64,000 nt of DNA from Thecamonas trahens ATCC 50062. Its lineage: Eukaryota; Protista; Apusomonadida. Numbering within the stretch: position 1 is the stretch's first letter; every line of letters begins with the position of its first letter. Positions 43,369-47,661 of the stretch are shown in pieces. The notes below the pieces were generated by a model. The model was not told where the DNA came from and searched no databases. It was given only the letters and a program-made list of their open reading frames with translations. Made by a program: the position numbers and the translations under genes. The stretch spans positions 1 through 64,000 of the forward strand of contig NW_013657648.1 of assembly GCF_000142905.1 (NCBI RefSeq). Direction: 5' to 3'.

Positions 43369-44172
43369 TCACGAGTGCAGGTCCGGCAGGTACGCGATCG
43401 CCAGCAGCCGCCAGCCGTCGAGTAGGCAGAGGATCATCATCGACGCCGCAAACGACTCGATAACAGCCTGCTTGAGGCTCCAGGTCTCGGCAAGAGCCTC
43501 ATCGAGCCGCCAGAACATGGGGAACGAGACCACAAAGTACAAGCCATAGAACATCGAGCCGACCGAGAGCATGTACGCACGGTCCTTAAAGTAGTACATG
43601 TCGTCAATCGATGACACGCCGAGCGTCTCGCCCATGGCAGTGGCGTAGGCGAGGACCACGACCGCGACCGCCACGGCGAGCGTCCGCATCACGCCGGGCG
43701 CCATGCCCGAGTGGATCCGCCGCAGGATGGGCGTGATGAGCGCGTGGTACGAGATGAAGAACCCGATGGTGAGGACGTGCATGATGAGCGGAATGTTCGC
43801 CACCCGCCACTGCACAGACTCAAAGGTGTAGCCGCCGTCAAAGAGCTCAAACAGCAGCGGCGTGTAAAAGTGGTTGGCAAGGAAGGAGAAGATGGTAATC
43901 CACACAAAGGCCTTGAACCAGTACTGCTCACTGAGTGGCTTGGCCGCATCCGGCGGCCCCATCCCGGGCGCCATAATGCTCAGCAGCCACGGGATGACGG
44001 CCACAGGCGCTGACACCGCCACCGCAAACGTCATGTACTCGACATCGCCCCAGGTGCGGAAGACCTCACTCAGCATGACCGTCCCAAACGAGATCAGCCA
44101 GTAAACGCCGTAGCAGAGCGAGAACTTCTCCATCCATGCCTTGGACGGCTTTTCTGCAAACCAGCGCGCCAT
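43369..44172 (-). CDS. CPI1: Cycloeucalenol cycloisomerase (cyclopropylsterol isomerase)-like membrane protein
   Basis: W.A..PSK.W.E.F, YWFKAFVWITIFSF, YTF, ETL, YYFKDR..M..VGSMFYGLYFVVSFPMFWRLDE and LLDGWRL are collinear with plant CPI1. Confidence 0.85.
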   Translation of the reverse strand: MARWFAEKPSKAWMEKFSLCYGVYWLISFGTVMLSEVFRTWGDVEYMTFAVAVSAPVAVIPWLLSIMAPGMGPPDAAKPLSEQYWFKAFVWITIFSFLANHFYTPLLFELFDGGYTFESVQWRVANIPLIMHVLTIGFFISYHALITPILRRIHSGMAPGVMRTLAVAVAVVVLAYATAMGETLGVSSIDDMYYFKDRAYMLSVGSMFYGLYFVVSFPMFWRLDEALAETWSLKQAVIESFAASMMILCLLDGWRLLAIAYLPDLHS

Positions 44173-44312
44173 CTGTGCAACCCTGCCCCACCCCACCCCA
44201 CCCCAGCCCCAGGACATTCCCCATGCGTGAGCTCGACCACATCGCCACTATCAGCCCAAAGAAGTCTGAGCCATGAAGAACATCATACCCACGACGACAA
44301 CTATGGCCATGA

Positions 44313-44313
44313 T

Positions 44314-44370
<57 letters not shown>
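44313..44370. repeat. (ATGACG)n hexanucleotide microsatellite
   Basis: Directly visible. Confidence 0.95.
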
Positions 44371-44533: not shown

Positions 44534-44790
44534 NNNNNNNNNNNNNNNNNNNNNNNNNNNNNNNNNNNNNNNNNNNNNNNNNNNNNNNNNNNNNNNNNNN
44601 NNNNNNNNNNNNNNNNNNNNNNNNNNNNNNNNNNNNNNNNNNNNNNNNNNNNNNNNNNNNNNNNNNNNNNNNNNNNNNNNNNNNNNNNNNNNNNNNNNNN
44701 NNNNNNNNNNNNNNNNNNNNNNNNNNNNNNNNNNNNNNNNNNNNNNNNNNNNNNNNNNNNNNNNNNNNNNNNNNNNNNNNNNNNNNNNNN
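44534..44790. other. Assembly gap (N run)
   Basis: Run of N bases just upstream of the voltage-sensor RasGEF gene. Confidence 1.
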
Positions 44791-44812: not shown

Positions 44813-47661
44813 ATGCGACTCCCCTCACAGACAGCGCTGCGTAAGCTGCTAGACTCTACAGTTGCAGCAGGAGTGATTGTCCTCCTTACGGTGTATGTCC
44901 TGTTTGTGGACGATGTGGTGGTCTTGGCGGGAGCGCCTGACCCGAATCAGTCTCAGGCTGTCTACGCTCTGTTGGTTCTGAAGATTGTGGTCTTCTTTGC
45001 CTTTGTCGGCGAACTGGTGGCAGAGTGCTACGCTACGCCAGAGTATGTCTTCTCCTTCTTCTTTTGGTTGGATCTCGTCACTCTCCTGTCCTTTCTTCCA
45101 GACTTTTGCTTGCTCTTTGGCTACAATCTCCTCTCCGCCATCGGTGGTCTCGTCGTTGCTCGTGCTGGTCGTGCTGCTCGCATCGCTTCCCGTCTAGCAC
45201 GCTTGCTCTCGCTGGTGCGGATGGAGAAAATCCTCAAGCTCCCGCCAAATGCTGCAGACTCGTTGGATGAGGTGGCTTCGTCGGCGACGGCCGGCGAGGC
45301 GCTGGCGCGCGTGAGGACCTCGCGGTTCCCGGGCTCGGATCTCAACCGGTCGACAACCAACAAGGTGACCGCCATTGTGCTCGTTCTTTCCTTGCCACTT
45401 CGCTGCTCCAGGCGGATCCGGCGTGGAACTCGTTTGCCACGTCTGCAGTCGCAATGCTCGATGCCTCGCTCGGTAACTCGACCGCGCCGCAGCGCGACTT
45501 TGCGCTCGATGCCTTTGTCACCTCTTACTCGTCGCCCAACGTCAACGTCATCGCCATTGAGGAGGACTCGCGCCTGCTACGCGGCTCACTCGAGCCGCTG
45601 GACCATACCCGCGCCTCTTTTGTGGCGTACGTGTACTCGGCAAACGGCCGACTGCGGGTCGTCTTTGACGTCTCGGCCCGCGAGAAAACCCAGGCCCTGT
45701 ACAACCTCCTGCTCATGGTCCTCGTCATCACGCTGCTCTTTTTCGGCAACTATGTCATCTGCCGCGCCTCCAACAAGCTCATCGCGCTCTCGTCCGAGCT
45801 CCTCTACCTCATGAAGCTCCTGACCCGACAGGCGAGCCAGAGGACCGACGGCGGCAGTGTGCTGGTCGACGGCCGGACCGAGCGGCGGACGCTTGGCCCG
45901 GTCTCGGCCCGCCTTCCATCGACCTTTTCGCGCATTTCGCGATCGACCCGGTCGGCATCGACGTCGTCGGAGGGGAGCGGCTCGTCGCTGTCGCACGAGT
46001 GCGGAGGCTTTTGCTCGGCCACAGCCTCGGAGTCGTCGCTCAACCGCGGCGAGACCTCGCCGCTCATTGGCACGCTGCCGCCGGCGCCTACGGTCGATCG
46101 CCCGCGCAAGCGGCCGACTGCACCGTCGCTCGCGACTGTTGTCACCGCGCTGAATGAGCAGACCGAGACTGAGCTCGCTCAGCGACGGAGTCTCCGCCGA
46201 GAGCTGCACGCTGCGCGGCTTGCCCAGCTCGGCTACGCTGTGCTCTGCGCGCGGCTAGAGCGGGTACATGCCGCTGAAGAGCGCAGCGATGTGCTCGCTG
46301 GCTCGTTCCGGCAGGTAAGCGAAGCCGACGTGGCATCGGCGTCGTCGACGTCGCCGGCATCGCCGCCGCTTGACGGCGCGTCGCTCGCAGGCATGTTTGT
46401 GTACATGGTCGGCGACGCCGATGTGGTGGCCGGCCTCTCTGCTCGGCGCGGGTCGCCGCAGCATACGCGCGCCCTCGAACTTGTCGACGGCTTTATTGTC
46501 ATGTCGCGATGGTCGGGCGTGGCGCCACTCGACGCGCTCGAGCTCCTGCTGGTAGCGTTTACCGCTCCGCCGCTTTTTTCGCTCTACACTGGCGAGACTC
46601 GCAACGCAAGCATGGCGCCACGGCTGATGCTGGCGCCGATCAGCTCGGGCCGGCACCCGCAAGGGTGGGCTCGCGGCGGTCGCCACCAAGCGGCGGCATT
46701 TGCCATCCTCGAGCGGTGGCTCTCGCTCGGCCTGCCCGAGTTTGGCTCACGGCGGACGCCCGAGGCTGAGCTCCTGGCCGCCTTTGTCAACGCACTTGCA
46801 ACTCACCGCTCATGGACGGTGGATGCCGGGCATTTAGAGCGGGCGATGAACCGCCAGCTCGACGGGTGGATCCAGCGCGAGGTGGCGCCGCCGGTGGTTC
46901 TGCCGCCGACGGCGTGCCCGCGGCCAGACGGCTCGCTGTACAACGTCTCGCTCCACTCGGTCCACCCGGTGGAGATGGCGCGGCAGATCACGCTCCTCGA
47001 GTCTGCGCTTTACCGCCAGATCGTGCCCGGCGAGCTGCTGCTCGCGGCACGGGCAAGCTGCGAGTCGGTCGCGGCCAACACGCACCACTTTGAAACCTCG
47101 GTGCGGCAGTACCAGCACGCGGTGCTCGCCGAAGACGACGCCATGGCTCGTGCAGCCATGATCGAAAACCTCATCCGCATCGCCACCGAGCTCCGCCGCA
47201 TCCGCAACTACAACGGAGTTATGGAGGTCACCGCAGCGCTCAACTCATCGGCGCTCAAGCGGCTCAAGCTGACCTGGAACTACGTCTCGTCCGAGGCCGA
47301 GGCCGATCTTGACCAGCTGCAGGTGCTGATGGCCATGACCAACAACTCGGCGGCGTATCGGAGCGAGCTTGCCGCCGCTGCACGCCGGCCGGACGAGCCA
47401 GTCGTCCCGTTTATCGGCCTTGTCCTCTCGGACCTGACCATGGTCTCAGCCAACGCCAAGTCCGCCGAGCGCGCCGTCCGCGAGGCCCGCATCGTCGTGT
47501 CGGCGCTCCGGTGGCAAGACGCAAGCTACGCCTTTATCGAAGTCCCGCGCGTCCAGGAGCTCTTTGCTCAGGTTCTGGACGGCGCTGGAGAGGTCAACGA
47601 CGACACACTGTGGGAGCGGTCGATCGCTCTGGAGCCTCAGGGTGGCAAGTCGCGATCGTGA
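44813..47661 (+). CDS. Voltage-sensor/ion-channel-like TM module fused to RasGEF (CDC25) domain; frameshift at ~45388
   Basis: S1 LTVYVLFVDD, S2 FFAFVGEL, S3 SFFFWLDLV, S4 ARAGRAARIASRLARLLSLVR, S5 TTNKVTAIVLVLFLATSLL (after adding one T at 45387-45389), S6 ALYNLLLMVLVITLLFFG. RasGEF: HPVEMARQITLLE, RNYNGVMEVTAALNSSALKRLKLTW, NSAAYR, PVVPFIGLVLSDLT. Confidence 0.85.

Follow-up and report, generated by a model that had tools for sequence, protein, structure and literature searches.

The window analysed here is a stretch of 64,000 nucleotides from the genome of Thecamonas trahens ATCC 50062, an apusomonad flagellate, and has a G+C content of ~64%. The gene AMSG_06962 is located at window positions 44813–47661 on the plus strand, as are all the features of the gene given below. 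Its public product is a 937-residue 'uncharacterized protein', 100% identical to the piece that bears the Ras guanine nucleotide exchange factor (RasGEF) domain. From the annotated start codon (44813–44815) the N-terminal part runs for 192 codons and encodes four hydrophobic helices (S1–S4). A second frame, already open ahead of 45388, continues as far as the stop codon (47659–47661), and contributes the rest of a fifth helix (S5), an insert of ~95 residues, a sixth helix (S6), a low-complexity linker and the RasGEF domain. S6 and the RasGEF domain lie within a single unbroken open reading frame (45454–47661), as had been stated in an earlier account made from the DNA sequence alone (the sequence-only reading). 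To judge from its sequence, AMSG_06962 is one gene, in which a relative of the voltage sensors is joined to a CDC25 RasGEF.

A frame change within S5

The two frames meet at a run of T nucleotides (45387–45389) that is one T short of the conserved reading. The break falls within the segment comprising the pre-S5 motif and the S5 helix (45350–45411), which is consequently divided over two frames. A search of the genome with the N-terminal 192 amino acids found eight or nine paralogous loci (E 1e-36 to 3e-4), six of which hold the entire membrane module in one frame. In all six the hydrophobic S5 follows directly upon the conserved pre-S5 motif, and the window encodes the same helix when one T is added. 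The public gene model removes a 35-nucleotide GT..AG 'intron' (45377–45411) at this position. It is judged false because its splicing deletes the conserved S5, and is rejected on the retention of S5 in the paralogs and on the relative scores of the two products. Using a profile built from the six paralogs only, with the window excluded, the read-through protein (carrying X at the break) scored 270.1 bits over profile positions 3–354, from S1 through S6, compared with 236.1 bits for the public spliced protein.

The paralogs L015 (contig C37) and L017 (contig C7) also shift frame inside the module, in each case with a deficit of one T in a run of T, and the orthologs known from elsewhere (P0010 and P0012, respectively) read in one frame. 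Three identical homopolymer deficits suggest a systematic sequencing error. The frame change at 45387–45389 is thus probably an error of sequencing or assembly in which one T is missing, and a real frameshift is rather unlikely. That the locus is one gene with a missing T, and contains no gene boundary, had been proposed from the sequence, and is now the most likely reading from the paralogs, the orthologs and the read-through score.

At L015 (3020–3130; KNC51693.1, 'RasGEF A') two frame changes bracket S4, the first lying where a TTTT run is one T short. In the public model of KNC51693.1 a GT..AG mini-intron of ~40 nucleotides is placed across this shift, leaving S4 in the wrong frame. At L017 (3100–3180) S2 is split by the one-T deficit, again in a TTTT run, and there is a second frame change ahead of S5. 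Its ortholog P0012 is intact and 66–81% identical, with EF-hands inside the REM domain. The public gene models of at least two Thecamonas family members (AMSG_06962 and KNC51693.1) therefore appear to be wrong, with false mini-introns hiding S5 or S4.

Voltage sensor, ectodomain and RasGEF domain

The first four helices have the signature of a voltage sensor. S1 (residues 17–39; 44861–44929) carries D33 and D34, the latter aligned with E119 of Hv1. S2 (residues 49–74; 44957–45034) contributes the charge-transfer pair F64 and E67 in an F-x-x-E motif, and S3 (residues 78–102; 45044–45118) contains W85-L-D87 together with D97. S4 (residues 110–142; 45140–45238) presents R117, R120, R123, R127, R130, R136 and K139, with serine (S133) in place of one arginine of the family, so that seven basic residues remain. 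The N-terminal 192 amino acids matched the voltage-sensor structures of Hv1 from sequence only (5oqk, E 1.2e-4; 3wkv, E 1.6e-3), with F64/E67, D87 and R117/R120/R123 aligned with Hv1 F150/E153, D174 and R205/R208/R211. Since the same piece matches both Hv1 structures and the paralogous loci, these features are far beyond chance. The charge-transfer centre is present, formed from the aromatic and acidic residues of S2 and the aspartate of S3, and the basic residues of S4 have the spacing of a voltage sensor. In the predicted model of a paralog the four-helix bundle superposes on solved voltage sensors. Both the signature and the fold expected of the N terminus by the sequence-only reading are thus upheld, and S1–S4 can be assigned by homology as a voltage-sensor domain (VSD) with an intact charge-transfer centre and seven basic residues in S4.

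The Pfam family Ion_trans (PF00520), which had also been anticipated, did not match the window N terminus. The paralogs score 15.9–23.5 bits against a cut-off of 25, and some members of the family lie above it (26.6–32.7 bits). Conservation was calculated over 158 modules. F64 is 99% conserved, position 67 is Glu or Asp in 100%, D87 is 99% and D34 94% conserved, and each of the eight basic positions of the family S4 is conserved in 66–92%. The ectodomain (below) is far less conserved than S1–S4. The near-invariance of S4 and its countercharges across >150 modules with a poorly conserved ectodomain argues that they are under selection, and gives the strongest indirect evidence that the sensor works.

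S4 is connected to S5 by a variable linker (45239–45349) that ranges from ~45 to ~280 residues among the paralogs and is of low confidence in the paralog model. Between S5 and S6 the chain forms an ectodomain (45412–45693), which consists of a sheet of four strands together with two helices and contains N-x-S/T sites. Modelled from the window's own sequence, this insert is predicted to be a small alpha/beta domain (pLDDT 91). Two aligners ranked periplasmic sensor domains of histidine kinases and chemoreceptors highest for the model; the fold scores are weak (PDC/Cache-like). No pore helix or selectivity filter is found between S5 and S6 in the insert model, no pore domain occurs among the structural matches, and the S5–S6 region of the paralog model does not superpose on channel pore domains. 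S5 and S6 are accordingly modelled as forming no pore. The description of S1–S6 as channel-like overstates the resemblance because of this lack of a pore loop; the VSD and the two further helices stand, and the insert is a predicted ectodomain. S6 (45694–45855) is a membrane helix as far as 45762, from which it runs on as one long cytosolic helix. A conserved Asp and Pro at its cytosolic end are lost in AMSG_06962.

The module of one paralog was modelled in two copies, and gave an ipSAE of 0.55, the best of three controls giving 0.00. Among proteins solved as pairs of a single chain, 21 of 30 reach the mark for a dimer, as against none of 23 solved as single chains; for eukaryotic proteins the figures are 17 of 29 and 0 of 30, respectively. 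At least 82% of the contacts are shared between runs, with a partner pLDDT of at least 61. The paralog module is therefore predicted to dimerize through S5, the ectodomain helices and S6, with the voltage sensors lying outside.

S6 is followed by a Ser/Thr/Arg-rich linker of low complexity (45856–46390) of ~180 residues, within which a helix-like segment can be read from the sequence at ~46159–46284. In total ~360 residues separate S6 from the CDC25 domain. The second part of this distance is a region at the position of the REM domain (46391–46968), which had been described as REM-like. That description is not sustained. The Pfam REM family (RasGEF_N, PF00618) gave no match to the window protein at E up to 1, and a REM profile made from eight members of the family scored 0.6 bits against it; at ~46693–46797 the C-terminal half of REM is matched, but below significance. 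The paralogs do have REM (E 3e-8 to 2e-20).

The CDC25-homology RasGEF domain (46969–47640) is found with confidence by Pfam (PF00617, E 1.1e-39, 136.6 bits against a cut-off of 23.1), so that of the two Pfam families proposed for the protein this one is confirmed. The domain aligns over its full length with RasGRF1 (2ije_S, E 3.5e-21), yeast Cdc25 and SOS1, and the core motifs are kept. Within it, the helical hairpin (47395–47511) has a tip that lacks ~9 residues and a motif kept by every one of the 13 sequences aligned with it (12 members of the family and a single vertebrate RasGRF1). The first helix of the hairpin is present, and resembles that of the active yeast Cdc25. In its effector half AMSG_06962 appears from these comparisons to be the most eroded copy in the family.

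The start of the protein is less certain. An assembly gap, seen as a run of N (44535–44790), is located 22 bases upstream of the ATG, and the frame is open through it; the true N terminus is consequently uncertain and a longer one is possible. A hexanucleotide microsatellite (GATGAC, 44312–44370) lies just before the gap, and this spacer separates AMSG_06962 from a divergently oriented sterol-isomerase-like gene on the minus strand (43369–44217). The G+C content of the membrane module (44813–45870) is 59.5%, and that of the remainder of the gene (45871–47661) is 67.6%. The lower value fits a composition rich in Phe, Leu and Val, rather than a foreign origin.

Distribution and evolution of the module

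Searching 1.84 billion representatives with a profile made from the module (alignment A1) returned 3107 proteins with E ≤ 0.001, among them 210 with E ≤ 1e-30; the 150 best matches mostly extend from S1 through S6. By local comparison ~100 of these 150 carry the C-terminal domain found in the Thecamonas paralogs L014 and L016. This is a divergent class III cyclase, matching CyaC (1wc0) with E 3.5e-4, and a relative reaches PF00211 with E 9e-10. The catalytic domains of L014 (4222–5466; C18) and L016 (4578–5597; C53) are themselves very divergent and fall below the Pfam threshold, it being L016 alone that reaches CyaC at this E value. Both may be pseudo-cyclases.

REM and CDC25 domains are present on 11 of the best 150 matches. 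There are at least five module-RasGEF genes in Thecamonas, and the entire architecture is encoded in single open reading frames of 1209–1420 codons in three of the paralogs. It also occurs in the dictyostelid Cavenderia fasciculata (EGG21142.1), in Ceratiomyxa fruticulosa, in the nucleariid Lithocolla globosa and on metagenomic apusomonad-like contigs, and a further search extended the list to Dictyostelium cf. discoideum, D. purpureum, D. firmibasis, Polysphondylium, Tieghemostelium, Acytostelium and Synstelium. The same architecture, for which the sequence-only reading had proposed a search, is thus found in other protists. AMSG_06962 evidently belongs to a widespread, unstudied paralogous family of membrane-anchored proteins with predicted Ras-activator activity.

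Other effectors are found on the module, namely RhoGEF-PH (Acytostelium and D. purpureum), RGS (including the alga Triparma) and GAF-phosphodiesterase plus cyclase, and a phosphodiesterase occurs on either side of the module in relatives. The proteins with RhoGEF-PH, RGS, phosphodiesterase or GAF-phosphodiesterase plus cyclase are P0040, P0047, P0063, P0074, P0164, P0045, P0168 and P0073. From these domain assignments the six-helix module is a promiscuous sensor module with at least six types of output. The paralog L011 (1711–4179; C43) has an SH3 domain before the six-helix module, and its reading frame ends ~30 residues after S6 with no enzyme domain. L011 and its ortholog P0005 represent a module-only form.

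Proteins of the family are tagged in databases with PF26726 (Pfam 38.1, 'Helical_RasGEFs'), which is a model for part of the module. It is assigned to the dictyostelid relatives of RasGEF type; the precomputed list for the public AMSG_06962 protein, which is without S5, gives PF00617 alone. In the Atlas the cyclase-type paralog L016 adjoins clusters of ciliate cyclases and of apicomplexan 'adenylyl cyclase alpha' (score 0.98), 99–100% of whose members have PF26726.

A maximum-likelihood tree was calculated for 77 modules; it is unrooted and from a quick search. The RasGEF-type, RhoGEF-type and SH3 or module-only copies form one group (SH-aLRT 95), placed beside the Thecamonas-type cyclases (SH-aLRT 97). 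The nearest kin of the window module are the C61 paralog and its ortholog, and its branch length is 0.75 compared with a median of 0.69. The cyclase type is found in a euglenid, Rhodelphis, Pigoraptor, alveolates and stramenopiles. Because it is so much more widely spread, we infer that a RasGEF took the place of the cyclase on an ancestrally cyclase-linked module, in an early amorphean. Such a swap had been suggested from the sequence. The tree supports it to the extent of nesting the RasGEF type beside the cyclase type, and the direction is taken from the distribution, the tree being unrooted.

Comparison with known systems and possible function

The same six-helix module, with an S4-type sensor and an effector placed after helix 6, is found in the class III adenylyl cyclases (AC) of alveolates (Paramecium and Tetrahymena AC, Plasmodium AC-alpha) and in the VSD-cyclases of oomycetes, which are likewise without a pore loop between helices 5 and 6. 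The alveolate enzymes have a cyclase with a TPR-like tail, whereas AMSG_06962 has a CDC25 RasGEF on a long linker. The membrane pattern had been recognized from the sequence as that of the channel-like cyclases. This is supported, the kinship to AC-alpha resting on the cyclase-type paralogs, the position of L016 beside the Atlas clusters and the shared Pfam family PF26726. The alveolate cyclases have a G-x-G motif after helix 6 and have been called 'radically different' from canonical channels (PMC3283738), and the sensor-cyclases of Phytophthora are without pore-helix homology (PMC12223298). The absence of a pore loop in AMSG_06962 agrees with this literature. Purified Paramecium cyclase has been reported to have K+ conductance, and the family is labelled in reviews as channel/enzyme fusions (PMC10651576, PMC12414865).

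Hv1 and SLC9C1 are non-canonical uses of the VSD, as is AMSG_06962; Hv1 is the sole solved protein found by sequence with the window N terminus, and SLC9C1 is among the structural matches. SLC9C1 is the sperm Na+/H+ exchanger with a VSD, and AMSG_06962 is without its transporter domain. The proton-selectivity residue of Hv1, D112 in S1, falls in an insertion relative to the window, next to Y28 in the alignment. Ci-VSP, a phosphatase that senses voltage, has only four helices, joined to the enzyme by a short linker. AMSG_06962 differs from it in having two more helices, an ectodomain, a dimer (predicted for the paralog) and the ~180-residue linker, and in a predicted output that is a small GTPase rather than a lipid. 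Bacterial receptors of the PDC/Cache type (WalK, CusS, Mlp24 and PctA) share the layout of membrane helix, alpha/beta sensor, membrane helix and signalling helix, and the predicted dimer of the paralog runs through these same parts. SOS, RasGRF1 and yeast Cdc25, with which the catalytic domain aligns end to end, are recruited to the membrane via adaptors, lipids or Ca2+. AMSG_06962 differs from these in being a predicted integral membrane protein, with no recognizable REM and a shortened hairpin tip.

We consider that AMSG_06962 is one gene in which a pore-less module of VSD and ectodomain feeds a RasGEF, and give this overall reading a probability of ~0.6. The input would be movement of S4 with the membrane potential, binding to the ectodomain, or both. 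The dimer core of S5 and S6 and the long S6 helix would pass the signal to the cytosol, where the activity of the RasGEF, or its access toward a membrane-bound GTPase of the Ras family, would be altered. We infer from the conserved sensor that the RasGEF may be under the control of voltage. Several properties weigh against this reading. The S4–S5 linker is variable and of low confidence, and the low-complexity stretch after S6 is long, both of which speak against simple mechanical coupling. Furthermore, the frame change sits within a membrane helix, AMSG_06962 alone is without detectable REM and the hairpin-tip residues kept in all the other sequences, the S4 arginine replaced by serine and the Asp and Pro of S6 are lost, and no ortholog of this copy was found outside the genome. 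AMSG_06962 may therefore be a specialized or a decaying member of the family. The frame change, the losses and the lack of an ortholog would be expected of an eroding or dead copy, in which the frameshift is real and the product is a pseudogene or a non-catalytic scaffold, any working voltage-to-Ras proteins being the better-kept paralogs. We regard this as rather improbable. Apart from the single T, ~940 codons are open, the score of the CDC25 domain matches that of the intact paralog L012 (136.6 and 132.6 bits), the branch length of the module is ordinary, and the same deficit in T runs is seen in two other paralogs with intact orthologs, pointing to a systematic sequencing error. The intact paralogs are in any case better subjects for experiment than AMSG_06962. 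That the intact members of the family are direct voltage-to-GTPase switches, with S4 maybe co-gated with a ligand of the ectodomain, and with sister modules controlling RhoGEF, RGS, phosphodiesterase and cyclase, is put forward tentatively.

The remaining alternatives concern the nature of the input and the unity of the gene. The protein could be chiefly a ligand receptor, in which the ectodomain senses an outside chemical, the S5/S6 dimer core relays this to the RasGEF and the VSD tunes or anchors. We think this possible, if doubtful. Two aligners independently ranked periplasmic sensor domains first for the window ectodomain, the topology and predicted dimer interface match the class of bacterial PDC/Cache receptors, and in a feature search the cyclase-type relatives resemble bacterial Cache/HAMP cyclases. 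However, the fold scores of the ectodomain are weak and it is poorly conserved, and the near-invariance of the VSD charge-transfer residues and S4 charges is hard to explain without selection on the function of S4. A true ion channel with an attached RasGEF, having four subunits and an S5/S6 pore as proposed for the Paramecium cyclase, would account for six membrane helices with S4, and for the K+ conductance reported for that enzyme (PMC10651576, PMC12414865). It is very improbable, given an S5–S6 region that has neither pore helix nor selectivity filter and superposes on no pore domain, the G-x-G position in the alveolate relatives (after helix 6; PMC3283738) and the dimer predicted for the paralog from the two-copy model; a canonical pore was rejected on the folding of the S5–S6 insert as an ectodomain. 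Scarcely credible is a division into two genes, a small membrane protein of four or five helices and an independent RasGEF starting at 45454. The parts do lie in different frames, and an ATG at 45454 opens the second reading frame. Yet upstream of 45454, as far as the T run, the second frame has no stop and is conserved, and the architecture is in single reading frames in three paralogs and in the homologs of Cavenderia, Dictyostelium, Ceratiomyxa and Lithocolla, on which grounds two separate genes were rejected.

In the literature searches no paper was found that describes a RasGEF, RhoGEF, RGS or phosphodiesterase fused in nature to a voltage sensor. A 2023 review of sensor-bearing proteins has only channels, VSP, SLC9C1, Hv1 and the alveolate cyclase (PMC10651576), and in a 2025 paper the sensor-cyclase family is seen as confined to stramenopiles and alveolates (PMC12223298). 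A survey of Dictyostelium RasGEF proteins shows transmembrane bars in its domain figure without discussion (PMC1273635). The architecture was thought undescribed in the sequence-only reading, and this holds for the papers found, but it is not unique, being present in apusomonads, in Amoebozoa including Dictyostelium and in a nucleariid, and part of the module has a name in Pfam. What is new is the interpretation, since the sequences are already in public databases and Pfam has its model for part of the module. The name of that model, 'Helical_RasGEFs', gives no hint that a voltage sensor is included.

To our knowledge very few proteins turn voltage into chemistry without passing ions, these being the voltage-sensing phosphatase, SLC9C1 and the cyclases of alveolates, which have been little studied, and we know only of indirect explanations for the link between voltage and Ras. 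If S4 drives the enzymes of this family, the membrane potential would act directly on the excitable networks of Ras and Rho by which cell migration is steered. The RasGEF and RhoGEF versions in Dictyostelium would then be candidate sensors for migration guided by electric fields and, because orthologous architectures exist there, a standard model organism is available for testing the idea. More generally, the membrane potential would be, across eukaryotes, an input coupled through enzymes to signalling by small GTPases, G proteins and cyclic nucleotides.

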